Sequence record: PV764602.1
Strand: one strand, 5' to 3'
Length of the DNA stretch: 64,000 nucleotides
The position numbers and the translations under genes are program-made. Shown piece after piece: positions 21,891 through 51,367 of the stretch (positions within the stretch are counted from its first letter, which is position 1; every line of letters begins with the position of its first letter). The notes under the pieces are model-generated. The model did no database searches. It was not told the DNA's origin and saw nothing but the letters and a program-made list of their open reading frames with translations.

Positions 21891-21966
21891 GGACATGTAG
21901 CTCAGCTGGTAGAGCACCGGACTGTTAATCCGGCCGTCGCAGGTTCGATCCCTGCCTTGTCCGCCA
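21891..21966 (+). tRNA. trnN: tRNA-Asn (GTT) with encoded CCA
   Basis: Cloverleaf: acceptor GGACATG/CTTGTCC, D arm GCTC/GAGC, anticodon stem CCGGA/TCCGG with GTT at 21924-21926, T loop TTCGATC, 3' GCCA. Confidence 0.95.
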
Positions 21967-34994: not shown

Positions 34995-35384
34995 ATGAAC
35001 CAGTACAAGCAGCGTACCTATATCCCGGTGACGACTGTTCCTGTGGACGTGAAGGGTAGCGAGACTGAGCAGCTGCTGGATTATCTGGCAAGCTCGATGA
35101 ACAATCCTCAGTTCCGATTGTCGAAACAGATTCCTGTCAGCACTCCTGAAATGATTACTCCGAAATACGAGTTTTCGCCGGAGATCATGAGCTATGACAA
35201 GTACGGTACTGAGTATCTGTGGTGGGTGCTATGCAGGTACAACGGCATCATCCATCCCCTCCACCCCATCCTCGGCTTCGTCGCTGGTAATTGGGTCAAC
35301 GTTCCTAGCGCTGCTGACGTTACGCAGTGGCTCAAGAACATCGGTCTTGACCAGCAACAAATTTCCCGTCTAGTAAGGGTCTAA
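34995..35384 (+). CDS. Baseplate wedge protein (gp53/LysM-like)
   Basis: ISYxxYG-type MSYDKYGTEYLWWVLCRYNGIIHP motif. Confidence 0.75.
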   Translation: MNQYKQRTYIPVTTVPVDVKGSETEQLLDYLASSMNNPQFRLSKQIPVSTPEMITPKYEFSPEIMSYDKYGTEYLWWVLCRYNGIIHPLHPILGFVAGNWVNVPSAADVTQWLKNIGLDQQQISRLVRV

Positions 35385-35385
35385 C

Positions 35386-36513
35386 ATGCTCAAGTATGAC
35401 AACGGGCTGGAATTGGACGTTACCATTGGTGGCGTCCAGCTTCCTGACAATGAGTTCTCGTTTCACCACCTGTCCCTAGTCAGTGACACTCGGTATTTCT
35501 TGCCGATGATGTTCATGCAGTTCGCTGACCAAGGCGACATTCTTCGGAAGGCTGGCGTTACCCTGTTTGACGCCGTACCCATTGTCATTAGCTTGGGCAC
35601 TGGCGATCAGAAAAGGAACTACGAGTTCCGCCTCCACCGTCCTGAGCAAGTCACCAGCGGCAACCTGACCATCTACAAAATGAGCGGGTATCTAGATGCC
35701 CCCAAGTACCTAGCTGAGTCTCAGAACATTGGCTACACGGGTACTAGCTCTGAAATCATCAGTCAAATCGGTGAACGTAGCGGCCTCACGCCACAGGTTG
35801 AGGATACCACCGACAACCAACGATGGTGGCAGGCCAACCGCCGCAATGCTGAGTTCGTTCGCTACATGGCCCAGCATGGATACAAGTCAGATGATTCCCT
35901 CATGTGTACGGGTGTGCGCTTCGACCGCTCCTTGCGATACATGGACCTGAACGCCATCGAGCCGCGAGATATGTGGCTGAGTTACACAAAGATGGACCAA
36001 AACGTCGTTACAATCGTTGACCACCGATTTAACGATCCTATGGGTGGGAATAATTTGATTAGGGGATACAGGAGTCGCACGGTAGATCAGAAGGTCAACA
36101 CTCCTGACACCAACTACAACGACACCACCATCAATCCCCGTGCTTCTACCGTGAGCATGAACCTGGACCTACAATCGCAGATTCAGCGAGGCAAGGTCGA
36201 GTTCTCACCGCTGTACGCTCCGGGTCAGGTGCACGATAACTGGGCCAAGGCCCGCCACCAAAACCTGCGCGGTCGCTATCTCAACAATTCGATCTGCGTT
36301 GCGCTGACCACTAACCAATCTAATCTGGACCTGTTTGATAGTGTCAAGATTGACAGCAGCTTGTCGATCCGAGACAACACCATCGGCGATGGTCAGAACA
36401 ACAGTCGGGAAGGTCAGTACATTGTGGCAGGCAAGGAGATCATGCTTGTCGGTCGCAACTACGGCGAGAAGATCAAACTGATGCGCGGCGGTATGAACGG
36501 AGAGAGTCAATGA
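35386..36513 (+). CDS. Baseplate hub protein (gp27/gpD-like)
   Basis: Size and position between gp53-like and spike genes; WWQANRRNAEFVRYMA. Confidence 0.65.
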   Translation: MLKYDNGLELDVTIGGVQLPDNEFSFHHLSLVSDTRYFLPMMFMQFADQGDILRKAGVTLFDAVPIVISLGTGDQKRNYEFRLHRPEQVTSGNLTIYKMSGYLDAPKYLAESQNIGYTGTSSEIISQIGERSGLTPQVEDTTDNQRWWQANRRNAEFVRYMAQHGYKSDDSLMCTGVRFDRSLRYMDLNAIEPRDMWLSYTKMDQNVVTIVDHRFNDPMGGNNLIRGYRSRTVDQKVNTPDTNYNDTTINPRASTVSMNLDLQSQIQRGKVEFSPLYAPGQVHDNWAKARHQNLRGRYLNNSICVALTTNQSNLDLFDSVKIDSSLSIRDNTIGDGQNNSREGQYIVAGKEIMLVGRNYGEKIKLMRGGMNGESQ

Positions 36514-37247
36514 GTATCGGTATGGGCGTCCGTGAATCGGACAGCTACAAGGGCATTATTTTCTATGGCAAGGTAGTGGACAACAATGACCCCGAACAGC
36601 TACGGCGTGTACGTGTCCATATCCCCGAGGTCTACGGTGATACCCCTCCCGAGGAATTGCCGTGGGCCTTCCCCAAATGTCCTCCTAGCGGCACTGGCCA
36701 AAGTAGCACCTTCGGTAGCTACGGTGTGTTGGACGTAGACAGCGAAGTATGGGTGGAGTTCCAGCAAGGCGATCCCCACTTCCCTATGGTGATTGGCGTA
36801 GCCTTGCGCGCCGACCTTCGGAAGCAGACTGAGCTAGTCAACTATCCTCACCGCTACGGCCTTGACGATTCCAAGGGTAACTGGATCATCGTTGACAAGC
36901 TGACAGGCGACGTGGAGATTGGCCACTTCTCTGACACCCGTGTACGCATCGAGCCTAATGGTAACCTGCACATCACTTCGGTAGCCAATCAAACGATCAC
37001 GGTTGAGCAAAATCAAGAGACCGAAATCAAGGGTAACGCTACTGTGCAGGTGAAGGGTAACGTCAACGTTACCGTTAACGGCAATGCGGAAATGAAGGTC
37101 GATGGGGCTATGAAGGCTAACATCGGTCAGAACCTCCAAGCTACTGTGGGCGGTAGTGCCACTGCCCAGGTTACTGGCCCCGCCACCATCAATTCAGCAG
37201 TCAAGATTTCGCTCAACGCACCAACGGTAAGTATCAACGGAGCATAA
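36510..37247 (+). CDS. Central baseplate spike (gp5/gpV OB-fold plus beta-helix)
   Basis: GKVVDNNDPEQLRRVRVHIP, LPWAFP and VWVEFQQGDPHFP; 8-residue VxGN repeats. Confidence 0.88.
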   Translation: MSIGMGVRESDSYKGIIFYGKVVDNNDPEQLRRVRVHIPEVYGDTPPEELPWAFPKCPPSGTGQSSTFGSYGVLDVDSEVWVEFQQGDPHFPMVIGVALRADLRKQTELVNYPHRYGLDDSKGNWIIVDKLTGDVEIGHFSDTRVRIEPNGNLHITSVANQTITVEQNQETEIKGNATVQVKGNVNVTVNGNAEMKVDGAMKANIGQNLQATVGGSATAQVTGPATINSAVKISLNAPTVSINGA

Positions 37248-37248
37248 G

Positions 37249-38181
37249 ATGGGAACGATCACCATTTCAGTGACAGAGCCTTTGCCTACGTTCGACAGTC
37301 TGTATCAGGCAATGCTCCCGAATCTGACGTTCCCTCCGACCGGATTCCAGTGGCCACCCGCCCTCCCCGGTATCCCCACTATGTTTCCCTCTATCAGCTG
37401 CCCTAACATGAGTGGTGTCATGGCGATGGGCCAGTTGATGACCGAGCAGTTGCTCACGTCTGCGTTCATGATGATTAAGCCTATCTCAGAATTCCTAGGC
37501 TTGGCAATGTCTGCCATCCCCAAGATTCCCATCCTGAACATTGGCGTAGATCAGTTGCTCACTATGTCGGGTGATGATTTGATCGCGGCAGCAAAGGGCG
37601 CAATGCCTTCGCTACCTAACCTCTACTTCTCCCTCGACATACCGGACATCAACGTCGTGCAGTGGCTGACGCAGCTGAAGTCTAGCTACCTTATGTCACT
37701 AGCCGGGTACTTGCAAAACATCATTAAGCAGGTGACAGACAAGATCAAGATTCCGGGCATGCCCACGTTGCCTACCATCCCCACGATGGAAGACGTGAAG
37801 CAAATGCTGATAGATCAGATTCCCCCTCCGATCAATGACCTTCGCAACGTTGACCTCAACGCGCTATTGGCCAACATCAGCATCCCAGGCATCCCCTTCG
37901 TTTTCTCCCTGCCGTCGCCTTTCATCCCTAACATTTCGATGCCTGAGATTGACTTCAACGAAATGATTTCGGGACTGTACAATAGCATCGTCATGATGCC
38001 GATGAAGACAATGCAGGACTTCATCATGGACAAACTAAGTAGTGTGATTTCCCTCCAGCTGCCTACGCTGGTTTTGGTCATTCCCACTATTGAGATTCCC
38101 ATTCCGGAAATCCCAATCCCTGTTATCCCGCCGCTGCCTAGCATCCCGGACCTGCCTCCGCTCACCATCCCTGTACCTTGA
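37249..38181 (+). CDS. Pro/Ile/Met-rich hydrophobic protein following the spike
   Basis: About 45 Pro in 310 aa, in (I/L/M)-P-x triads. Confidence 0.7.
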   Translation: MGTITISVTEPLPTFDSLYQAMLPNLTFPPTGFQWPPALPGIPTMFPSISCPNMSGVMAMGQLMTEQLLTSAFMMIKPISEFLGLAMSAIPKIPILNIGVDQLLTMSGDDLIAAAKGAMPSLPNLYFSLDIPDINVVQWLTQLKSSYLMSLAGYLQNIIKQVTDKIKIPGMPTLPTIPTMEDVKQMLIDQIPPPINDLRNVDLNALLANISIPGIPFVFSLPSPFIPNISMPEIDFNEMISGLYNSIVMMPMKTMQDFIMDKLSSVISLQLPTLVLVIPTIEIPIPEIPIPVIPPLPSIPDLPPLTIPVP

Positions 38182-38198
38182 TTCATTGGAGAATCTAT

Positions 38199-38831
38199 AT
38201 GACTATTTCTACCCCTTGGCTATCCGGAGGTAGCGGCCTAACTACTTCTGGCCCCAATGACTTGAAGCCTGCACAGTTCATAGATCAAGTAAAGGCGTTG
38301 CCCTTTGGGCCAGCGCGTTACGAAGCGTGGCCGGGCCCAAACGGTCTTCAGCTTGACCCTAATAAGTTGCAGGGACAGATGGCCACTATTGAGGTTGGCT
38401 CTGCTCTATACAACCTGCTGGCTCCGTTTCTTTTTCATCAGGTCCAGTCCCCAAATAACTATTCGTACAAATTCGATCTATACGATTCCGTTGAGGAGTG
38501 TGTAGAAATACGGGCGTACAAGTTTGAACCTGGTACCACGTTTGATAACGGTGACCATTTCTCCTTCCTCCATACTAGCATGACAGCTGACTCGCATCGT
38601 AAGCTAGTGGCGTTTTGGAATTTGAACTGGACCCTCTCGGATCCAGCCACCATGTCTATACCTCCCCTATATCTCGCCTGTGATTACCCTTGGACCACTT
38701 ATTGGTACGCTGGAGATGATGCACTTCGGATGGTGCCGGGGCCTGTGTGCTGGACTATAGGGCGCATGATGCCCTATATGCCTACTATGTACTGGTTAGA
38801 GGTATTCTTTAAGGGCCCAACTTTCGTGTAA
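38199..38831 (+). CDS. Degenerate 2OG-Fe(II) oxygenase paralogue A
   Basis: Aligns by eye to 39786..40391 (YKFDLY, HRKL, KGPTF); HxD is HFS and the distal His and Arg are lost. Confidence 0.65.
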   Translation: MTISTPWLSGGSGLTTSGPNDLKPAQFIDQVKALPFGPARYEAWPGPNGLQLDPNKLQGQMATIEVGSALYNLLAPFLFHQVQSPNNYSYKFDLYDSVEECVEIRAYKFEPGTTFDNGDHFSFLHTSMTADSHRKLVAFWNLNWTLSDPATMSIPPLYLACDYPWTTYWYAGDDALRMVPGPVCWTIGRMMPYMPTMYWLEVFFKGPTFV

Positions 38832-38847
38832 GCAGGAGGCCCTTGAA

Positions 38848-39789
38848 ATGCCTGTATCTAATCCACCTACCTTGTTGAGTGTCATTGCAGAGTTCGGAGG
38901 CCCTAACAATCTTGGGGCCTATTACCGCAAAGGTCCATACGTACCTGACGGTCCTCCGCAGAATGCCAACATCAGTGATACGCCGGGCGGTCTTCGTCTC
39001 AGTCAGTTTGCGGGTGCGGTCAAGTACAATCTCAGTGCGTCCCTGAATCGCACGACCGCCAACACCAGTGGTAGTGGCAACAGCCAGTCGGGACGTGTCC
39101 TAACTCCACAGCTGATTGTTTACCCCGTTAACGGCAGCGGCAACTACAGCTACTACTGGAACTACACCGCAGGCGTCCCTGTTAGCGGAAATACCAGTAG
39201 TACGTTCCAGCTGTACGCTGATCTCAACAATGGTCAGAACATTTCTGGCAACGGTAACTGCGTGGTTACCGATAACGTCACTGGTCAGAATGCGATCCCT
39301 AGCTTTACGTTCTACCTAAGCTGGACGTATGAACGCCCACCCACCTGTGTTGTCATGGAAGCATACCTGCACGATGGAAAGCAGGCAGGCATGTACAACT
39401 CCAACGATCCTCTGCTGTTGGTCGATCCATACGCAAGGACTTCGGAGACGCTGAACATCGTAGATGCGCAGACCTTCACCCGAGAGTGTGTGACCTTGGT
39501 TACTGCCAATGGCTCACGCCTAACGTGCTCCACCACTGCACCTATTCCAGTCAAAGCCGACTCGGAAACGCTGGTTCGTGCGGTGGATGCTCTAGGCCAC
39601 CACGTTGCTACTACCACACGCCCTAACGACGTGATCCCATCGGTCACTTGGGATAAGGTAGTGCGTGTGCTGCCTGCTGGTGAGCGTGCTGTCCGCAATA
39701 TCTACATCTACGACAAGTGCTTCTGGGCTTCGGATGACAATCGTTCGTTCATCCTCCATCACAACACGACTGGTAAGCAGATCATATGA
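38848..39789 (+). CDS. Adhesin-like tail protein with C-terminal Hint domain
   Basis: N-terminal attachment-type domain ending LRLSQFAGA; Hint from C (39346) to HHN (39765) followed by TTGKQII. Confidence 0.65.
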   Translation: MPVSNPPTLLSVIAEFGGPNNLGAYYRKGPYVPDGPPQNANISDTPGGLRLSQFAGAVKYNLSASLNRTTANTSGSGNSQSGRVLTPQLIVYPVNGSGNYSYYWNYTAGVPVSGNTSSTFQLYADLNNGQNISGNGNCVVTDNVTGQNAIPSFTFYLSWTYERPPTCVVMEAYLHDGKQAGMYNSNDPLLLVDPYARTSETLNIVDAQTFTRECVTLVTANGSRLTCSTTAPIPVKADSETLVRAVDALGHHVATTTRPNDVIPSVTWDKVVRVLPAGERAVRNIYIYDKCFWASDDNRSFILHHNTTGKQII

Positions 39790-40391
39790 TCGTCAACAAA
39801 GAACCACGCACCGCTACTCCGATGAATTGGTTGCCTACGTACTACCTCAGTCGGATGTTTAACGCAGAAGAGTGCGCCACCATCATCAAGGAGTCAGAGG
39901 ACTCCGGACTGTTTGTGCAAGGCCGCACCATTGGCGACAATAACGTGACTGTAACAGAGCAAGGCCGTCAGGTGGCCATTATCCGACTGGCTGGAGGTAC
40001 GCTGTACGAAATGATGCGCCAACGGATACTGGAACGGCTGCCTGACCTAAACTCCTGCTATCAGTTTGAACTGTTCGGCGCAGATGAAGTCTTCAAGGAA
40101 ATCCATATCCTGAAGTACGTGGAAGGTAATTTCCACGGTGAACATTTGGACCTCGCCGGTTACGAGGAAATGTGCAACCGGAAGCTCAGCCTCATCGTCC
40201 AGTTGAATCCGGATTACGAGGGCGGTGAATTAGTCCTCTACAACTCTTATCCCGAGAAACCTCTGACCAATAGCAAGCAGGCTGGCGACGCAGTGGTGTT
40301 CCCTGCATGGATGCCGCACGAAGTAAGACCTGTTGACTACGGGACTAGATACGTTCTTGTGGTTTGGTTGCGAGGCCCTAAATTTAGATAG
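39786..40391 (+). CDS. 2OG-Fe(II) oxygenase (prolyl-hydroxylase/PKHD-like)
   Basis: HLD...RKLS...YEGGEL...FPAWMPHEV...TRY...WLRGPKFR: complete HxD..H triad and 2OG-binding Arg. Confidence 0.9.
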   Translation: MIVNKEPRTATPMNWLPTYYLSRMFNAEECATIIKESEDSGLFVQGRTIGDNNVTVTEQGRQVAIIRLAGGTLYEMMRQRILERLPDLNSCYQFELFGADEVFKEIHILKYVEGNFHGEHLDLAGYEEMCNRKLSLIVQLNPDYEGGELVLYNSYPEKPLTNSKQAGDAVVFPAWMPHEVRPVDYGTRYVLVVWLRGPKFR

Positions 40392-40401
40392 GGAGGTACT
40401 C

Positions 40402-40989
40402 ATGGCCGTATCAAACCCACCAACATTGGTGAGCGTGCGTAACGAATTCGGTGGCAACGGAAATCTCCGTGCCTACACACGAGGCGGTGGCCTTGTTCCA
40501 GATGGGCCTGCGCAGAATGCGAACATCAGCAAAACTCCGGATGGTTTGCGGCTTAGTCAATTTGCAGGAGCAACTAAAATCACTGCACAGTTGACCGACA
40601 TTTATGCGCAGCAGTCCTACTACGGACAATCGGGTCAAGACAACACTGCTTCTGCCACCATCCAGTTTAGTACCGATGGCAACATCTACTACACATGGGG
40701 TATGGGAGCTTTGCAGACGTACCGATGGTTGGCTGGCGGTAATGCAAGTGATTTTGACGTAGAAGGATTTAATCAGCAGATCGCAGGTAACGGTCAAACC
40801 TCGGGCACGATGAATCGTCAGAATTTGGGTGGTTCTCCCCGATGGTCATGTTCCGCTGCAACCCGATTTGGTTTTGTTGATTCTTCCATGTCATTTGGCT
40901 GCCGAATCTACCAAGCGGGTACTGGTAACGTTATCGCTACAGCGAATTTCAGTATTTATGCCGCCGCCTCAGATGGTAGCATCGGATAG
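40402..40989 (+). CDS. Adhesin-like tail protein, paralogue without Hint
   Basis: First ~59 aa closely match 38848..39789; the remainder is unrelated. Confidence 0.65.
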   Translation: MAVSNPPTLVSVRNEFGGNGNLRAYTRGGGLVPDGPAQNANISKTPDGLRLSQFAGATKITAQLTDIYAQQSYYGQSGQDNTASATIQFSTDGNIYYTWGMGALQTYRWLAGGNASDFDVEGFNQQIAGNGQTSGTMNRQNLGGSPRWSCSAATRFGFVDSSMSFGCRIYQAGTGNVIATANFSIYAAASDGSIG

Positions 40990-41044
40990 CAACTCCATCT
41001 TCTAGTAACAACCAAAACGTTTGACACAACAAGGGAGAAGAAAC

Positions 41045-41722
41045 ATGTTCCAAGAAAGGGACCAAACTACAGCCAAATGGAATCCCCTCTGCCACGAACA
41101 GGTCAACTTGATTAACTCTTCGCTGATCGCGCGCCTCAAGGCGAAGGCAGATGAGTATCCGGTTAACCCTTACGGTTGTGGGTGGGATAACGGCGTTCCA
41201 CTGGACCTTACTGCACCAACGGCCAGTGACGCGTCGCCAGAAGCTGCGTTGATTCACGACACCCGAACACTCATCGCAGAATGCGTCCACCGCCTAGCAG
41301 GCTTCTATCCATTCGATTTGTATTTCAAGGATGCGGCCTTTGTTGTTCCTGCCCCACAACCTTCTTCGGTACGCTTAGTGCGACTCGCTATGGGTGCGAA
41401 GCTTAATCCGCCCCACGCTGGTACGGCGGTTGCTCCCGGCGCCACGAATCGCATTGATCTGAATACGCATAGTCAGGCTCATCAGAAGATTCATATGATG
41501 ATCCCGCTCTCTGCTTACGAAGGTAACGACGTGTTCTTCCCCTTCTTCGATCCGAACTTGCAGGAATGGAAAGACGTGTCGCCCACCATCACTAACGCAC
41601 GGGCTGACTGGACAGGCATCACGTTGTCATGGCCTGCGTGGCGGTTGTGTAGGTTCAGTCCCGTCGAGGACGGCGAAGCCTACCTCCTGCTAGTCACGTT
41701 GTACGGACCTCGCTTCCAGTAA
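41045..41722 (+). CDS. Degenerate 2OG-Fe(II) oxygenase paralogue B
   Basis: YPFDLY, HQKI..AYEG and WPAWRLCRFSPVEDGEAY..YGPRFQ; both His ligands and the Arg are lost. Confidence 0.65.
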   Translation: MFQERDQTTAKWNPLCHEQVNLINSSLIARLKAKADEYPVNPYGCGWDNGVPLDLTAPTASDASPEAALIHDTRTLIAECVHRLAGFYPFDLYFKDAAFVVPAPQPSSVRLVRLAMGAKLNPPHAGTAVAPGATNRIDLNTHSQAHQKIHMMIPLSAYEGNDVFFPFFDPNLQEWKDVSPTITNARADWTGITLSWPAWRLCRFSPVEDGEAYLLLVTLYGPRFQ

Positions 41723-41748: not shown

Positions 41749-42153
41749 ATGGCAACCACCAACAACATCCTGTTTAGTGACTTCAACACGCTAGTCGGGT
41801 TGAATAACAAGCAAGCCATCGTCATCAATGATGATGCAGTTGCCAATGTGGTGCTCAACATTGTTCTGATCCAGAAGCGCAGCCGTAAGTTTCGGATTGG
41901 GTATGGAGCATCAAGTCACTTCTTCCTGCAAAAGCAGGTGACTGCTGAGAACGCGGAGAAGTACAGGATGACCCTCTACCAAGACCTGACCAAATGGGCC
42001 GGGTCTGTAGCCAAGTTTGATATGGCGGGCATCCAAGTGAAGCCTCTCCAGAATTACGACGGTTACGGAGTGGTCATCCTGTACAAGTCCAACCTTTCGG
42101 GTTACTACAATCAGGTTTCAGTCCAGCTGCCGTCCACCTCGGTGGCACGCTAA
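41749..42153 (+). CDS. Baseplate wedge protein (gp25-like)
   Basis: DAVANVVLNIVL...RKFRIGYGA; size; upstream of the J-like gene. Confidence 0.75.
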   Translation: MATTNNILFSDFNTLVGLNNKQAIVINDDAVANVVLNIVLIQKRSRKFRIGYGASSHFFLQKQVTAENAEKYRMTLYQDLTKWAGSVAKFDMAGIQVKPLQNYDGYGVVILYKSNLSGYYNQVSVQLPSTSVAR

Positions 42154-42338
42154 TACCGAAAATAGGGCCAAAATAGGCCCACAGCACCCTCTACCCACAG
42201 GGCGCCAAATTTAGAGGCTCCAGCTTCCATCTACGACCCCAATCCTTGCGTCAAAACGCATAGTTGGGGCGTAGATTTTGGCTACATTTTCCACTCCCCA
42301 ACCCTCATTTTCCTATGGCCACTGACCGGAATTCAACC

Positions 42339-44096
42339 ATGACAACTGTAACCGCGTTGTCCAATATCCGCCCTGACTTCGATGACATTGCAGCACAGCT
42401 GGGATCGAGTCTGACGCGCAAGGCGAACTGGGCTCCGCTGCTTCCTACTCAGACTGCAAGCCTCTTGATTGAAGGCGTGGCCGCCGCCACTGCGTTCCTG
42501 CAAACCGGTGTGCAGAACAGCTTTGAAGAAACGTTCCCTCAGACCGCCCGTATGCCTTCGAGCCTGCGGGCGTCTGCGCGTCGGCTCGGTGTCCGTCTGA
42601 CGCGCAAGTCCCCTGCACAGACTCGGGTACGGCTCACGCGAGCCACCGCAGCCACGTCCGTCCTGATCCCTGAGTTCTCGGCCTTCCAAGCGCCGGGTGT
42701 GTCTCTGTTCAACCGCTCTGCCATACTGTTCCCCGTCGGTACCCTCTCCGCTGAATTCGACTTGTACGAAGGCTTTATCACTCAGGTTTCGTACACGGGT
42801 CAAGGTGCTGACAGTCAGATGATCGTTGTATCTGTCCCCGGCTTCACCATCAGCAACATGGACGTGCGGGTCACTGTCAGTGGCCGTCCGCTGCAAGTGG
42901 TGACTGATGGCATCTGGCACTACCCCATCACGAACAGTGGCGATCCTAACTACGTGGTATCGGACAACACGCTGCCTACGGGCGAGCTTCTGCTTGAGTT
43001 CGGTAACACTCAGTTCGGCATGATCCCTCAGCGTGGTGCGCAGATTCTTGTGTCCTATGCTGTGACCAATGGTACCTCCGGCAACAACGTACAGTTTGAG
43101 AATCAGCGCATCACGTACTCGGCCAACGGTGTTGAGTTCACTGGCAGCGCGCTTACTCCACTCACCGGAGGTACTGACGAACTTGACGCAGAGCAGTACC
43201 GCGATAGTCCGTTGATCTACGCGTCCTACGAGCGCGCGGTTGCTATTCCAGACATGCCTGCTATTGCTACGAAGTATCCCGGCGTTGTCGATGCCATCTT
43301 CCTTGGTCAGAAGGACATTGCTCCGAATCTCAAGGAATTCATGAACGTTGTCTACACCTACGTTCTGATGGATACGGGTTCTCAGATTTCTGCTACGCAG
43401 TACACGGACTTCCTCAAGTGGTGGCAGCCTCGCTCGATGCCCCTTGAGTACGTCCGCCAAACCGCCAAGCAAATTGCAGTAGACGTTGCAGGCACCATCT
43501 ACATCACGGGTCAGGGCGATCCGGATTCCATCTTGGCCAAGGCGCGCGCAGCAGTTGCCAAACTGTTCACTGCACGCCAAGGTTACTTGGGTCGCGATCT
43601 GTACGTGGACGACCTTATTGACTCCATCCGTACTTCGGACCCTTACGTTGACCACGTTACCCTGACTTCACCCACCGCTGACGTTATCTGTAAGATCAAC
43701 GCACCGCAGGCCCCTACTGTTACTCCGGCTACTGGCGGTACGCTCCCCAACGGTACGTACATCTATTCGGTGTCTGCTGTCTCCAATCTCAGCCCTGTGC
43801 AAGAAACGTTCGCTTCGGTGAATGGTGCGGTGACGCTGACGGGAACGAACAACGCCGCACGTATCAAGTGGAATGCAGTGGCAGGTGCTGTGCAATACAA
43901 GGTGTACGGGCGCACTGCTTCCCAAGAAATGTTCCTGCTTGCCACGGTCAGCGCATCTTCTGCGCTTGAATTCTTGGACACGGGTTCTGTTACTACTGGC
44001 GCTGCTGTCAACAAGATCAACACTGCGGGTATCTCTTACGTTACCCTCAACAATACGAACTTGCAGGTGGCGTTCACTGATCGAGTAGGTGTCTGA
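42339..44096 (+). CDS. Baseplate J/gp6-like wedge protein with FN3-like insertion
   Basis: TARMPSSLRASARRLG, GGTDELDAEQYR and ERAVAIPD; alternative start at 42315. Confidence 0.85.
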   Translation: MTTVTALSNIRPDFDDIAAQLGSSLTRKANWAPLLPTQTASLLIEGVAAATAFLQTGVQNSFEETFPQTARMPSSLRASARRLGVRLTRKSPAQTRVRLTRATAATSVLIPEFSAFQAPGVSLFNRSAILFPVGTLSAEFDLYEGFITQVSYTGQGADSQMIVVSVPGFTISNMDVRVTVSGRPLQVVTDGIWHYPITNSGDPNYVVSDNTLPTGELLLEFGNTQFGMIPQRGAQILVSYAVTNGTSGNNVQFENQRITYSANGVEFTGSALTPLTGGTDELDAEQYRDSPLIYASYERAVAIPDMPAIATKYPGVVDAIFLGQKDIAPNLKEFMNVVYTYVLMDTGSQISATQYTDFLKWWQPRSMPLEYVRQTAKQIAVDVAGTIYITGQGDPDSILAKARAAVAKLFTARQGYLGRDLYVDDLIDSIRTSDPYVDHVTLTSPTADVICKINAPQAPTVTPATGGTLPNGTYIYSVSAVSNLSPVQETFASVNGAVTLTGTNNAARIKWNAVAGAVQYKVYGRTASQEMFLLATVSASSALEFLDTGSVTTGAAVNKINTAGISYVTLNNTNLQVAFTDRVGV

Positions 44097-45712
44097 TGAC
44101 TATCTATAACGGCGATGATCCGAATACCTTGTTGCCTAATGCTTCATCCATCAACCCACTAATCACCTACGGCTTCCATCAAGTCTATGGCAAGATGGAC
44201 GGGAATGGCGTTGTTGTGGATACGATGGGCATCATGCTGCCAGAAGGTTTCCGTGATCTTGACGTGTGGCGAGACTTCGCTGATAGCGTCGATGAGGTGA
44301 TGAACAGCGAGATTGCAACGCAGATCGAAAGCCTGATGAGCACGAACGACCCGTATGCGTCTTCGGTGAATCCTGCTATTGACCGCCGTACCCTCCTGTA
44401 CCTCATTGGTGCAATCGGATTCAAGTACAAGCAAAACGACGTGTTTGACATTGATGATTTGAAGCGGTTCGTTCGGCATACTCCGCAATTTTGGGGTGAG
44501 AAGGGCAACCGCTTCTTCATTCAGTACATGAGCTATGTCGTTAACGCCCAGCTTCAAATGCAATACCTGTGGACGCAGGACTACAAGGTGTTCGTACCCG
44601 AGGGTAGTCCGCTGATTGGTCGCCCTGTGTGGGAGTCCGCAGTAAATGCCACTGCCAACGTGGTCCCATTCGGTACAGGCGATGGGGCTCAGACTGTGTT
44701 TCCCCTGATGGTGATGAACTCCACCATCGACAGCGTTTCGGGGACCCCTACGATCTACCGCGTTGACTGGGCAGGACAAACGCGCCTATACAACACACCA
44801 CGCACCAACCGCATTAGGCGAAGTGTGGAAATTGGTAGCTCAGCATGGACCAATAGCAGTCCTACCAATCTGATAGTGCAGACCACTTCGGCCTTGGCAC
44901 CCGACGGTAGCGCGACGGCCTCCGTGCTCAAGCCCATGACTACGGGAGCCAATGCAGCTTCGCTGCTCGATGGTAGCGCGGTGACGCCCGGTCCTGTGAC
45001 TTGTAGCGTTTACCAGTCTTCTGAGGGACTGGCCGCAGGGCAAAAAGTTCGATACGCGCTATGGAGTGTGAATTCCAGCAATGTCACCACTCTAGTTGGT
45101 CAGACAGATTTGGAGTGGACGGGCACTCAGATGCGCGTGGCGGCGTATAGCGGCGTTGCTTCTAGCGTCCTACAGTCTTTGGGTGACGGCTGGTACCGGA
45201 TTGAGTATACGGGTACAACTGACGTTGGTGCACGCCTTTCAATCCAGCCGGGCCTAACCCACACCAATCCTGTTACGGTGTGGGGTGCTCAATTGGAGCA
45301 GGGTAGTTCCGCTACTCGCCTCATCAAGACTTATGGCGTTGAAGTAACCACCACGGATTTCGCCTTCACTAACAGTAATCGGAGTATCACCCTGTCGTCA
45401 CCTCTACCTGTAGGCGCAAGCCTTAGCTGGAGCGGAACGTACAATCAGGCAGGCACTTGGTACCCAACAAGTCACGTATACATCGTCTATGACGTTGATA
45501 AGTTCCGAGGCTCAGTCTCGAATAATTTCAATAGTCAAGACAGCTTGGCTGCATTTTTCTACACCATCGCTCCAATTGAACTGGTGATCCAGTCCTTCGT
45601 TCTCAACGTCAACTTTGATCCTACGATTCTACAGTTGGCGGGTGACGTGCAGATTAGCGTGTATACGCCGATGGAAGTGGAAGCTATTACTCCGATGAAC
45701 ACTAGGGCTTGA
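44096..45712 (+). CDS. Baseplate wedge protein (gpI/gp7-like) with inserted carbohydrate-binding-like domain
   Basis: FWGEKG and WYPTSHV flank GTGDGAQTVF and VWGAQLEQG inserts. Confidence 0.7.
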   Translation: MTIYNGDDPNTLLPNASSINPLITYGFHQVYGKMDGNGVVVDTMGIMLPEGFRDLDVWRDFADSVDEVMNSEIATQIESLMSTNDPYASSVNPAIDRRTLLYLIGAIGFKYKQNDVFDIDDLKRFVRHTPQFWGEKGNRFFIQYMSYVVNAQLQMQYLWTQDYKVFVPEGSPLIGRPVWESAVNATANVVPFGTGDGAQTVFPLMVMNSTIDSVSGTPTIYRVDWAGQTRLYNTPRTNRIRRSVEIGSSAWTNSSPTNLIVQTTSALAPDGSATASVLKPMTTGANAASLLDGSAVTPGPVTCSVYQSSEGLAAGQKVRYALWSVNSSNVTTLVGQTDLEWTGTQMRVAAYSGVASSVLQSLGDGWYRIEYTGTTDVGARLSIQPGLTHTNPVTVWGAQLEQGSSATRLIKTYGVEVTTTDFAFTNSNRSITLSSPLPVGASLSWSGTYNQAGTWYPTSHVYIVYDVDKFRGSVSNNFNSQDSLAAFFYTIAPIELVIQSFVLNVNFDPTILQLAGDVQISVYTPMEVEAITPMNTRA

Positions 45713-46857
45713 CCATGACCCAACTTTACATCACTGAGGCAGGCATTGCCGCTGCCAACTCGTCCAGTCCTAACGGACCGATGATTCAGATCGTGTCGTT
45801 CGCTCTAGGCAGCGATTACGGATACACCCCTCCGCCGTCCTCTGTGTATCCGGGCGCTAACAGCGTCGTTACTTCGCAGAGTGCTCTACGGGGTACGGTA
45901 CGCTATCCAGTAGGCAATCAGCGTGCTGTGCCCAGTAACTACCACCTTGCTGCTGATGGCATCACAGGCGTGTTCACGCTGGTAGTTGGTCTGGACGTGG
46001 GCGACTTCTCGTTTGGTGAAGTCGCTCTCTACATGCCCGGCAACGTCATGTTCGGTATCGCAGTTCTTCCGCAACTGCAAACCAAACTGACCACTACGCA
46101 GAGTCAGACGGGCAACATCATCAACATGACGGTCAGTTTCCAGCTGAACGGCGTCAAGCCCAACATCACTGTGCAAAATGTCACGACCGCACTAGCAGAT
46201 ATTCGCACGGTCGGTACCGTTGACGTGATGAGCCCTCCGTCGGCCAGCCCTACCAACAATGCCATTTCTTTGCAGGTTGATGAATACAACCGCAGCAATT
46301 TGATGACGAAGCGTGACACCGACCTGTGGCAGTCACAACAGTATGACTGGGTTGTGCATGAAGGTGTTGTGCAGGTATCGGGCGATAAGACTCTGAGTGA
46401 TGCGACTCTGGCTACGTCGCCTATCTACGTTGCACCGGGCCGCTACATTCTGCAATTCACCAGTGGTGCGTTGAAGGGTCAGGTTCGCCAAATCACGGCC
46501 TTCCCTGTATGGGCTGCGAGTGTAGTGCGTCGTGTGGGTGACGTTGTTCAGCCGACCAACAATCCCAACGTTCTGCTTAGGTGCACCACCGCTGGTACTT
46601 CGGGCACTGCCCAGCCGTCGTGGAACACTGGCGCTTCGGGTGCCACCACTACTGATGGCACGGCGGTGTGGACGTATACGCCCAACCGGGACTCCCCGAA
46701 TACCACGCTTTCGTGGGCAGGCTCTACCTCGTCCAATGCGCTGAACGGCGTTACTTACACCGTGTATCGTGCTGCATCCTTCAGTGGCATTCGTCAGTAC
46801 ATCGGCGAATACATGCTGGACGCAATGCCCATCAACTATTACAATCAACACCACTGA
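45709..46857 (+). CDS. Proximal tail fibre/baseplate-anchored fibre (gpH-like N-terminus)
   Basis: LYITEAGIAAA, GDFSFGEVALY; CBM-like WAAS...RCTTAGTSG module. Confidence 0.7.
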   Translation: MTMTQLYITEAGIAAANSSSPNGPMIQIVSFALGSDYGYTPPPSSVYPGANSVVTSQSALRGTVRYPVGNQRAVPSNYHLAADGITGVFTLVVGLDVGDFSFGEVALYMPGNVMFGIAVLPQLQTKLTTTQSQTGNIINMTVSFQLNGVKPNITVQNVTTALADIRTVGTVDVMSPPSASPTNNAISLQVDEYNRSNLMTKRDTDLWQSQQYDWVVHEGVVQVSGDKTLSDATLATSPIYVAPGRYILQFTSGALKGQVRQITAFPVWAASVVRRVGDVVQPTNNPNVLLRCTTAGTSGTAQPSWNTGASGATTTDGTAVWTYTPNRDSPNTTLSWAGSTSSNALNGVTYTVYRAASFSGIRQYIGEYMLDAMPINYYNQHH

Positions 46858-46869
46858 GGATTTCCCAAC

Positions 46870-47217
46870 ATGGCTTTCACTCCTTCCTCCGGCGTCCTCG
46901 GTCAGATCAGGCCCTCGGGCGCAACTGAGACTGTTCTCTACACCTGCCCCGCTGATGCACGCGCCTCTGTCAGCATTACCTGCTGCAACACGGATAGCGG
47001 CTCTACCACTGTAACGGTCAAGGTGAGGTCAGGTTCCACGTCCACTGCTCTTGTGAGCGGTGCTCAGTTGGCACCCGCAGGTGAGCAGGGACACTCAATC
47101 GACATTCGCGCTCTAATTCTTGGGCCGGGCCAATCGGTAGCAGTCACTAGCTTCAGCGGTACTGTAGATTTCAGTGCAATCGGGTACACGGCGCCTTCCA
47201 ACGTCGTTGCGTTCTAA
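46870..47217 (+). CDS. Small tail-fibre-associated protein
   Basis: TVLYTCP beta-sandwich pattern; located among fibre genes. Confidence 0.55.
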   Translation: MAFTPSSGVLGQIRPSGATETVLYTCPADARASVSITCCNTDSGSTTVTVKVRSGSTSTALVSGAQLAPAGEQGHSIDIRALILGPGQSVAVTSFSGTVDFSAIGYTAPSNVVAF

Positions 47218-49556: not shown

Positions 49557-50948
49557 ATGTGGATCACCCCTCAGAATCAAACTCTTGATGACACGTTCGA
49601 TCCATACTTTCCGGGTACAACTCGGTGGTATGGTTACACCGGCATCCTCATCAACAATACGCAAGACACCTACGATCGGTACGCTCCTTTGCAGTATGGC
49701 AGGCAAGCTCCATCCACGGCGATCCTTGCGCAGAATCAGGTAGACCTGAATCAGATTTACGCAGCCCGAGGTACAGCCGGCTACCTGCAAGGTATCTCTA
49801 TCCCAAATTGCTACGTGGGCTGCTCTGGCGTTACCATCAACGATCTTCTCGCTGCTCGATGCACCATCATCATCAAGAACGACGGTACGTGGCAGCAGTG
49901 GTTCTATTCCACCAACTACAAGACGGATAGCCCGGGTGCATATGCACCTCCTAATCGTGGCATCCCTCGAACCGAAACCAACTTCAGCAACGGACGCATG
50001 AACGCCGCCGGTAACTGGGCACAGATTCCGTTCGCTGGTGTGGGTAACAACTACGAGACTTTCTGCCACGCTCCTTGGGCTCCATACGAAAGCAAGAACC
50101 CACCTGATCTAGATTGGGGTACTGCCGATCACTATAATCGGTATGATGCTGCACTCATCAACTATATCTGGCACAACTTTAAGGGCCAAGGACAGTTCGG
50201 TAGTGCTAGTGATCCATACGTGGTGCAGAACACTACACAGAACCCTAATGAAGACATTCCAGATGGTCGGGTATATCGCATCGACCGCGATATTCGGTTC
50301 ACCCTTGGCTTGACTGCACAGGGACGCAACAACGTTCGTTGGAACTACGATGACAACGGTGCTCTGTCATGGTACAACCGAGCCAACTTTTCGGTGTACA
50401 TTCAGACACCCGGCGGCGGTCAGCGTGTAGGTGCCACCTGCCTTATGACCAATGAGATTCGTTGGAATGCGTGGAATTGGACGGGTGGTAGTGTCGGCGG
50501 CGGTGGTGGCGGTGGTGGCGGTGGTTGCGTTGCTGCTACCAGCTATGTTGACTTCCAAAAGACCGCAGGCACTGTTGAGGCAGGCGACTACCTCATGGGT
50601 ATGACGGATGATCTGCAATTTATGGAGCTACACGTCCTGAGTGTGCGTCGTCAAGTGCAACCGTGTGTCCGACTCTACTCAAAGAGTGGCGTCACCCTTG
50701 TGTGCTCAAAGTCCACGCCGCTGACCCTACAGAACGGAGATTGCGTGCTGGCAGGCGAAGCACGAGCAGGTATCAAGCTTCCGGTACGATTCTTCGCGGC
50801 TGATCCTGAGTGGGAAACCATCGTCAAGATCGAGGAGGTTGGCAACCGGGAAGTGATGCTCATCAACTGCGGTGGACAGAGCTATGCTGCCGGTGAGTTG
50901 CCGGGCCGCTATATCTACACCCACAACAACAACCAGCAGAAGATGTGA
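49557..50948 (+). CDS. Fibre-tip adhesin-like protein with Gly10 linker and C-terminal Hint domain
   Basis: Aromatic/Asn-rich body; G10-C start of Hint at 50526; THN at 50919-50927 followed by NNQQKM. Confidence 0.7.
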   Translation: MWITPQNQTLDDTFDPYFPGTTRWYGYTGILINNTQDTYDRYAPLQYGRQAPSTAILAQNQVDLNQIYAARGTAGYLQGISIPNCYVGCSGVTINDLLAARCTIIIKNDGTWQQWFYSTNYKTDSPGAYAPPNRGIPRTETNFSNGRMNAAGNWAQIPFAGVGNNYETFCHAPWAPYESKNPPDLDWGTADHYNRYDAALINYIWHNFKGQGQFGSASDPYVVQNTTQNPNEDIPDGRVYRIDRDIRFTLGLTAQGRNNVRWNYDDNGALSWYNRANFSVYIQTPGGGQRVGATCLMTNEIRWNAWNWTGGSVGGGGGGGGGGCVAATSYVDFQKTAGTVEAGDYLMGMTDDLQFMELHVLSVRRQVQPCVRLYSKSGVTLVCSKSTPLTLQNGDCVLAGEARAGIKLPVRFFAADPEWETIVKIEEVGNREVMLINCGGQSYAAGELPGRYIYTHNNNQQKM

Positions 50949-51367
50949 TGATTGGTTCTGACCAACTCTCAGAAGTAGGTGTACCTGTCGGAGAGCTCTC
51001 CATTGGGAGGACTCTCGACGTATATGCGGTGGACGATCTACACTCGGTCATCCGCCTGAAAGGAACCGTCTCAAATCGGGTCCTGCGCAGTGCAGAAGTA
51101 GTAACCATCACAACTGCCTCCGGCGCTTCCGTTGTGGTGGCTGCCCAAAGTCGCCTCCCTGTCTATAGCGGACAGACAGCGCTGGCTAAGAATGTTGGTG
51201 CCAACATGATTGCTGTGATGGCCCCTAATGGCGCTTTTCGGTGGGAGCGGGTTGCCACCATCGAGGCTGGTACTGAGGCCGTAGTGGACCTCAAGTGTGA
51301 AGGCTACATAGTAGCCGGTAACGATCCTAAAACCGGGCTAATCTTGGTGTCTGGATCGCTGCCGTGA
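50948..51367 (+). CDS. Stand-alone catalytically dead Hint-like protein
   Basis: TGATG-coupled; aligns by eye to the upstream Hint (VVTITTASGASVVV, WERVATIE); C1 and HN are absent. Confidence 0.55.
   Translation: MIGSDQLSEVGVPVGELSIGRTLDVYAVDDLHSVIRLKGTVSNRVLRSAEVVTITTASGASVVVAAQSRLPVYSGQTALAKNVGANMIAVMAPNGAFRWERVATIEAGTEAVVDLKCEGYIVAGNDPKTGLILVSGSLP

Follow-up and report, generated by a model that had tools for sequence, protein, structure and literature searches.

The baseplate operon of the Xanthomonas jumbo phage PhiXhv-15 (PV764602.1, 228.7 kb) is of the phiRSL1 type and carries, at its spike/gp25 junction, a lineage-specific accessory insertion of ~4.5 kb (37249-41722), here called the block. 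All coordinates are those of the window, the 64,000-nt stretch of this record that we analysed. In the block, a predicted intact 2-oxoglutarate (2OG)-Fe(II) oxygenase, Ox, is encoded directly after the small fibre-type protein adh1, and a second small fibre-type protein, adh2, is followed by gene B, which we assign as a catalytically dead, diverged paralogue of Ox. A further gene, A, is a probable and very diverged paralogue that has also lost the ligands. PhiXhv-15 is one of three X. hortorum pv. vitians jumbo phages described in 2026, and the known genomes of this type are five and nearly identical (PhiXhv-12, PhiXhv-15, PhiXhv-16, Ep026 and Ep032). We take the layout of the block to be real; it rests on these five genomes of one narrow genus, one of its components is dispensable, and its role we infer. 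The genes of the block and the one domain discussed separately are the following.

37249-38181, + strand: Pro-rich protein of 310 aa, the first gene of the block, with no family match.
38199-38831, + strand: gene A, 210 aa, probable very diverged, ligand-less Ox paralogue.
38848-39789, + strand: adh1, 313 aa, small fibre-type protein with an N-terminal module (N-module), a Ser/Thr/Asn/Gly-rich middle and a putative Hint-like C-terminus.
39340-39786, + strand: Hint-like domain of adh1, starting at Cys165 and ending in His-Asn plus a 7-residue tail.
39786-40391, + strand: Ox, 201 aa, predicted intact 2OG-Fe(II) oxygenase (PF13640, E 2.4e-15).
40402-40989, + strand: adh2, 195 aa, second small fibre-type protein, with an adh1-type N-module and a different C-terminal domain.
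41045-41722, + strand: gene B, 225 aa, assigned as a catalytically dead, diverged Ox paralogue (BLASTP to Ox, 5e-6).

The baseplate operon is tightly packed on a single strand. The five genes from A to B all lie on the + strand and each has a Shine-Dalgarno-like sequence; the stop codon of adh1 overlaps the start codon of Ox in the sequence ATGA, the coupling that a preliminary description of this DNA had pointed out, and adh2 and B are separated by a gap of 55 nt. A scan of the region for promoters and terminators gave no signal exceeding the shuffled background. The gene order and coordinates of the preliminary description stand, except that it had placed A next to the spike gene, and the Pro-rich gene (37249-38181) intervenes between the two.

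By its sequence, Ox is an intact oxygenase of the prolyl 4-hydroxylase (P4H)/PKHD type, to which PiuC and YbiX belong, translationally coupled to adh1. It matches PF13640 with 57.7 bits against a curated cut-off of 27, PHROG 61 at 4.5e-28, and NCBIfam NF003974 (Fe2+-dependent dioxygenase) at 1.4e-15, in the last case with 57 bits, far under the equivalog cut-off of 143. In the PDB it finds PiuC-type PKHD hydroxylases (6.5e-6) and prolyl 4-hydroxylase (5.8e-4). In an alignment with 11 homologues, H120, D122, H178 and R188 of Ox are invariant, giving the full iron triad and the 2OG-binding Arg; these are the HLD/H/R ligands noted earlier for the active copy. Ox is a distant member of its family, with best cellular relatives that are 40-44% identical over less than half of its length and nearest phage homologues, from cyanophages, with ~29-30% identity over 90% of the length. 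Among its relatives, Ox shows 4 synonymous and 0 non-synonymous differences.

In the comparisons made here, A and B resemble the local copy of Ox and not the wider oxygenase family. In BLASTP, A aligns with Ox over 152 residues (9e-5) and B over 160 (5e-6), each with 23% identity; both alignments extend from about residue 60 through the very last residue. In Smith-Waterman comparisons with Ox, 0 of 2000 shuffles reached the observed score (Gumbel p 8e-5 for A and 2e-6 for B), and the control pairs were at background level or at most at p ~0.03. The motif Y.F[ED]L[FY] is present in 3 of the 448 six-frame segments of the window, namely A (residue 90), Ox (92) and B (88); the ending G-P-x-F-x-stop is present in 4 of the 448, three of which are again A, Ox and B. 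Both motifs had been named as common to the three proteins in the preliminary description, and the scan bears this out. They were defined post hoc, with the sequences already inspected; their collinearity in A, Ox and B nevertheless appears striking.

Other comparisons were negative. A compared directly with B gave no significant similarity, and neither protein had a match in Pfam, NCBIfam, PHROGs or PADLOC; against the PDB sequences, A, B and adh1 had no match at E<=10. With an alignment of PKHD proteins, hhalign returned a probability of 0.2% for A and 3% for B. No further Ox paralogues were found in the window. A likeness confined to the local Ox fits an old duplication within the lineage, yet it leaves A on weak ground.

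At the ligand positions, A has H-F-S in place of HxD, Gly at the distal His and Met at the Arg; an earlier reading of HFS/W/M was right on H-F-S and Met and had Trp where we find Gly. B has H-A-G in place of HxD, on which BLASTP, MAFFT and hhalign agree, followed by Cys at the distal His and Ala at the Arg, so that of the RID/C/A read earlier the Cys and Ala are retained and RID is replaced. The first His is kept in both proteins, and the acidic ligand, the distal His and the Arg are lost in both. If A and B are paralogues of Ox, canonical binding of iron and 2OG would therefore be impossible for either.

Structure models of A and B were guided by alignments containing Ox and PKHD homologues. 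The B model has a mean predicted local distance difference test score (pLDDT) of 62 and a predicted template modelling score (pTM) of 0.67, and in this alignment-guided model low confidence is limited to insertions specific to B. Foldseek, run with this oxygenase-guided model, finds 35 PDB matches at E<=1e-3, led without exception by prolyl hydroxylases and other 2OG oxygenases. The leading matches are P3H1, PBCV-1 vCPH, the P4H enzymes of P. putida and B. anthracis, and PiuC, with E from 2e-5 to 1e-3 and template modelling (TM) scores of 0.43-0.6, and the viral structural matches are 2OG oxygenases of phages and giant viruses. We assign B as a catalytically dead, diverged paralogue of Ox, and A as a probable, very diverged and ligand-less one. 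The preliminary description had counted one active and two dead oxygenases and had expected the two dead ones to adopt the double-stranded beta-helix fold. The intact Ox and the dead B agree with this count; as to the fold, the B model is prolyl-hydroxylase-like but was steered by an oxygenase alignment, and A, with no profile match and no fold match, is the doubtful member.

The Pro-rich gene, adh1, Ox, adh2 and B are present in 5/5 genomes, all of which have the core form of adh1 then Ox and adh2 then B. B has 11 synonymous and 4 non-synonymous differences, giving a ratio of non-synonymous to synonymous rates (dN/dS) of 0.11 (p 6e-5), and the Pro-rich gene has 50 and 5 (dN/dS 0.03). On these counts both genes are under purifying selection, and we regard B as a selected protein rather than a decaying remnant. 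Two of the five genomes are the 'UNVERIFIED' records OQ603353.1 and OQ603359.1 (Xanthomonas phage Ep026 and Erwinia phage Ep032), for which hosts of different genera are named; they have equal difference counts versus PhiXhv-15 in every gene and in every 250-nt window of a 12.8-kb region.

Relatives of A and B were sought widely. An exhaustive phmmer search of 1.84 billion (1.84e9) representative proteins found no relative of B besides itself, a word-indexed search of 5.8 billion (5.8e9) proteins returned A and B themselves only, and tblastn and pattern scans of a phage collection, IMG/VR and metagenome contigs of the Joint Genome Institute (JGI) gave no relatives of either. One candidate for B, a 1476-aa repeat protein (P0034), was rejected: the ends of its FN3-like repeats match B residues 12-77 with a summed E of 1.4e-4, which we judged to be a chance match inflated by the repeats.

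Gene A belongs to a part of the operon in which PhiXhv-15 departs from all four of its relatives.

36250-38847, strand not applicable: PhiXhv-15-specific recombinant tract covering the 3′ end of the gene for a 375-aa baseplate protein, the spike gene, the Pro-rich gene and A.

The divergence amounts to 2-7% between about 36250 and the Pro-rich gene's end, then comes A, and from the first base of adh1 on there are zero differences. By this pattern, A is carried on a recombinant tract that comes from a relative not yet sampled, and since it is so diverged from Ox, it must have persisted somewhere over a long period. A public read-assembly contig of 1690 nt (L025) corresponds to window 37436-39124 with 99.9% identity and is an independent sample of the A-bearing tract; gene A in this contig has one single-base frameshift, which may be genuine or stem from the assembly. 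PhiXhv-15 has a second divergent tract of its own at window ~44800-46900, with up to 47 differences per 250 nt versus all four relatives. This tract takes in the 3′ part of the gene at 44096-45712 and a tail-collar-fibre-like gene at 45715-46857, a mosaic exchange of fibre genes.

The block is bordered by conserved baseplate genes, which were used to compare the operon with those of other phages.

35386-36513, + strand: 375-aa baseplate protein.
36510-37247, + strand: spike of the gp5/VgrG type, the left border of the block (PF04717 9.6e-12, PF22178, Gp5_C repeats (PF06715), PHROG 430 5.9e-29).
41749-42153, + strand: gp25/W-like baseplate wedge protein, the right border of the block (PHROG 261 1.5e-4).
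42315-44096, + strand: gp6-like wedge protein, 3′ of the gp25/W-like gene (PHROG 219 3e-39).

In the spike, both the OB-fold domain and the C-terminal beta-helix repeats are detected (by PF04717, PF22178 and PF06715). The nearest other genera are those of phiRSL1, Motura and BcepSaruman, whose gp6-like proteins are ~30% identical; spike orthologues are present in all three phages, and their W-like genes match the gp25/W-like gene with phmmer values of 2e-9 to 2e-6. The order PmgG-like protein, small protein, ~374-aa protein, spike, gp25/W-like, gp6-like is kept in those genera. The gp25/W-like gene comes immediately after the spike gene in phiRSL1 and BcepSaruman, and in Motura the junction holds a gene like those of GIY-YIG homing endonucleases with basic repeats (Achromobacter phage Motura gp135, L020 7689-8570). 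This gene order indicates that the 4.5-kb block is an insertion specific to this lineage, at a junction tolerant of such additions.

The two fibre-type proteins have a ~60-aa N-terminal module in common (4e-26; about residues 1-60 of adh1). We found this N-module also in the Xanthomonas jumbo phages LucasX and RTH11 and at 12 IMG/VR loci, and did not find it in 185,579 bacterial and archaeal species (one genome each). Elsewhere, N-module proteins have ~155-210 aa and variable Ser/Thr/Gly/Asn-rich C-termini, and their genes are often tandem pairs adjoining fibre genes for 1650-1900 aa. Beyond the N-module, adh2 resembles the second gene of such tandem pairs on the IMG/VR jumbo contigs L007-L009 (61.5 bits). 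In the family databases, adh1 has two weak tail-protein matches only, both in PHROGs (E 0.0025 and 0.0096), and adh2 has no match in Pfam, NCBIfam, PHROGs or PADLOC. Small fibre-associated proteins with a putative docking module is a fair label for adh1 and adh2; a role as adhesins is putative.

The stretch of adh1 from residue 165 to residue 313 opens with Cys and closes with His-Asn and a seven-residue tail, and C-termini that align with it are found in the fibre-like 'VlrC' protein of phage DLP6 (1824 aa) and in the ~445-aa proteins of LucasX and RTH11. Cys165 and the terminal His-Asn are invariant in these four fibre C-termini, and a poly-Gly linker precedes the Cys in three of them (DLP6, LucasX and RTH11). 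A profile built from the four sequences had only two matches among the 177,635 sequences of the PDB, both gp41-1 mini-inteins (E 0.045 and 0.2) and both collinear. Pfam found no Hint or intein model in the adh1 C-terminus, and in the weak HMMER alignment to gp41-1 the His column of the block-B Thr-x-x-His motif is Thr in the adh1-type domains. The Hint domain claimed for adh1 in the preliminary description is supported by its hallmarks, and we call this C-terminus Hint-like on that basis, with weak statistics. Since the residue after the Asn is often a non-nucleophile, cleavage rather than splicing would be expected.

Similar domains occur beyond adh1. A 463-aa protein at window 49557-50948 (+ strand) has a second Hint-like C-terminus, with poly-Gly, Cys, and His-Asn plus 6 residues (profile E 1e-31, residues ~323-464), and the 140-aa gene just downstream (50945-51367, + strand) has a partial match to the core of the Hint profile (E 4e-7); Pfam found nothing in either protein. 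Domains of this type, with poly-Gly/Cys...His-Asn and a short tail, end fibre-type proteins of several jumbo phages and of the T4-like Stenotrophomonas phage DLP6, and we found no description of such a fibre domain family in the literature. It may be a Hint-based counterpart of the self-cleaving chaperone domains of fibres. The loci with such C-terminal domains are the following.

L003, 11010-12356, - strand: poly-Gly/Cys...His-Asn C-terminal domain.
L004, 10944-12278, - strand: the same type of domain.
L005: the C-terminus of a coding sequence for 1824 aa.
L007 and L008, 10834-12165, - strand: the same type of domain.
L009, 10585-11922, - strand: the same type of domain.
L026: the same type of domain.

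Our tentative proposal, which we put at somewhat less than an even chance, is that the oxygenase-type proteins bind the fibre-type proteins, that Ox also hydroxylates a co-encoded protein, and that B, together with A, is non-catalytic. The block would be translated together with the late baseplate genes, given a presumed co-expression. Each oxygenase-type protein would bind the fibre-type protein encoded directly upstream, from a slot that in phages is usual for a fibre assembly partner. Ox would hydroxylate a residue of adh1, of the shared N-module or of the Pro-rich protein. B, and A where it is present, having lost the binding of iron and 2OG, may act as non-catalytic binders, assembly factors or small structural parts, and the Hint-like domain of adh1 may remove itself or its short tail during maturation. 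That these parts make up a virion hydroxylation system, with Ox modifying the fibre-type or Pro-rich proteins and the dead paralogues holding or delivering them in assembly, we consider quite improbable.

Several observations weigh against our proposal. The whole block is absent from phiRSL1, Motura and BcepSaruman, and gene A is absent from four of the five close genomes, being found only in PhiXhv-15 as a clean 665-nt indel; the synteny proposed as a check in the preliminary description thus holds for Ox, adh1, adh2 and B in 5/5 genomes, and not for A or for the next genera. No adh gene lies upstream of A. Profiles built without Ox miss A, and rank B second of 344 open reading frames with an E of 0.19. 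As true oxygenases made up the alignment that guided it, the B model is no independent test, and the A model failed (pLDDT 45, pTM 0.49), its best Foldseek match (E 0.7, probability 0.04, TM ~0.2) being noise. At 14 other jumbo-phage loci of the adh family, an oxygenase-like gene lies within 6 kb in none, so that a need for such a partner is not general to the adh module. The cyanophage homologues of Ox are placed between UvsY/gp32 and UvsW, in replication modules and outside the tail modules. An analogy with the non-catalytic subunits of collagen hydroxylases, raised in the preliminary description, is loose, as those partners (PDI, CRTAP) are not dead oxygenase folds. Much of this suits an account in which Ox acts on a host or other non-virion target and landed as accessory cargo at an insertion-tolerant junction. 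A and B would then be ancient copies whose roles are minor or unrelated, and their interleaving with the adh genes would carry no functional meaning. The GIY-YIG gene held by the same junction in Motura and the empty junction of phiRSL1 and BcepSaruman are in keeping with cargo, as are the replication-module setting of the cyanophage homologues, the occurrence of A in one genome only, the adh relatives without oxygenase neighbours, and a GC content at third codon positions (GC3) that in A and adh2 is below that of their neighbours. However, the low dN/dS of B and its conservation in 5/5 genomes, the ATGA coupling of Ox to adh1, and the presence in 3.5 kb of three paralogues interleaved with two paralogous fibre-type genes, which is improbable for unrelated cargo, make this account unlikely, if still a serious contender.

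The fold could also be used without its chemistry, all three proteins being fibre assembly partners or small parts of the baseplate or fibre, with the Ox active site as a leftover. Such a use agrees with the gene position, which is the normal slot of a fibre assembly partner, with the loss of the active site from 2/3 copies of which at least B is still selected, and with the lineage-specific motifs that all three have in common outside the catalytic residues. We find it distinctly unlikely, since all four catalytic and co-substrate residues are kept in Ox, the differences in Ox are 4 synonymous to 0 non-synonymous, and similarity to known tail-fibre assembly proteins is absent. The remaining possibility is that A, or less likely B, is unrelated to oxygenases, its likeness to Ox being due to chance or convergence, so that the block would hold one enzyme and orphan genes. 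The silence of the Pfam, NCBIfam, PHROG and PDB sequence searches points this way, as do the low hhalign probabilities with the PKHD profile, the failure of Ox-free profiles to find A, the low pLDDT and missing fold match of the A model despite an oxygenase-guided alignment, and the definition of the motifs after inspection. It is very improbable in view of the shuffle statistics for both proteins and their alignment from about residue 60 to the last residue, the Y.F[ED]L[FY] motif, which in the window is unique to the three and stands at equivalent positions, the G-P-x-F-x-stop ending of each, and the similar length and adjacency of A, Ox and B.

Parts of the block resemble known systems. Like the viral and bacterial P4H enzymes (PBCV-1 vCPH, Bacillus anthracis P4H, and Pseudomonas putida P4H, which acts on EF-Tu), Ox belongs to PF13640 and has the HxD...H...R signature, and the best structural matches of the alignment-guided B model are enzymes of this group. 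PBCV-1 encodes Pro-rich substrates, and a Pro-rich protein is also encoded near Ox. The protein of the phage block contains 14.5% Pro and is Pro/Ile/Leu-rich, without collagen-like or PAPK-type repeats; it has no match in Pfam, NCBIfam, PHROGs or PADLOC, and its gene is restricted to the 5 close genomes. A search for collagen-like Gly-X-Y repeats as possible substrates found none, and poly-Gly linkers only. The dead paralogues and the baseplate context are features of the phage block and are absent from the P4H systems. In sequence searches of the PDB and NCBIfam, Ox matches the PiuC/YbiX PKHD hydroxylases best, but they have a C-terminal helical extension that Ox lacks, Ox scores well below their cut-off (57 vs 143 bits), and their genes pair with TonB-dependent iron uptake genes, whereas Ox is found with tail genes. 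The cyanophage 2OG-Fe(II) oxygenases (T4-GC_28 type) are the nearest phage homologues of Ox, yet they are single genes in the UvsY/gp32-UvsW replication module.

For the inactive copies, JARID2 and Epe1 offer a parallel: they are eukaryotic chromatin proteins that serve as dead scaffolds with the 2OG/JmjC fold, combining ligand loss with retention under selection as proposed for B. We know of no dead scaffold of this fold in a phage. Additionally, the order of adh1 then Ox and adh2 then B is like that of a fibre gene and its partner (lambda/Mu Tfa, T4 gp38), but Ox and B have no Pfam or PHROG match to Tfa/gp38-type proteins and do not resemble the proteins of RTH11 and LucasX that are annotated as tail assembly chaperones. 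The adh1 C-terminal domain has hallmarks of self-cleavage, as the Peptidase_S74-type fibre chaperones do, but it is Hint-like and has no sequence relation to S74. It agrees with the BIL/Hint domains and the gp41-1 mini-inteins in its first Cys, terminal His-Asn, length of ~145 aa and weak collinear profile match, and differs from them in its position at the extreme C-terminus, its 6-8-residue tail, a next residue that is often a non-nucleophile, and a block-B His that is apparently Thr.

To our knowledge, phage genomes hold thousands of 2OG-Fe(II) oxygenase genes without a known target. Since Ox lies in a baseplate operon, with its gene coupled to that of a fibre-type protein and with inactive copies under selection beside it, the candidate substrates are narrowed to a handful of co-encoded proteins. 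The block adds a phage case of the retention of pseudo-enzymes, and, as a by-product, the analysis brings out a Hint-like domain family at the C-termini of fibre proteins from jumbo phages. Taken singly, 2OG oxygenases of phages, pseudo-enzymes and pairs of fibre and partner genes are known; in the papers searched we found no description of all three combined within a baseplate operon, in line with the preliminary description, and the 2026 paper on these phages mentions no oxygenase. If the hydroxylation reading is true, no earlier pathway of post-translational hydroxylation that involves pseudo-enzyme partners would have been described for the virion of a tailed phage.

Some observations concern other parts of the window. 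The gp25-like and gp6-like genes are separated by a gap of 160 nt (42154-42314) that has 15 differences and a 2-nt length difference versus all relatives, although the two genes themselves are identical or nearly so. The records label the 129-aa gene at 34995-35384 'tail sheath', but its match to a baseplate wedge PHROG (5.9e-10) is slightly stronger than the sheath match (2.4e-9); the label is probably wrong, because 129 aa is far below sheath length. A tRNA-Asn (GTT) at 21891-21966 (+ strand) is the sole Rfam/ARAGORN match in the window.

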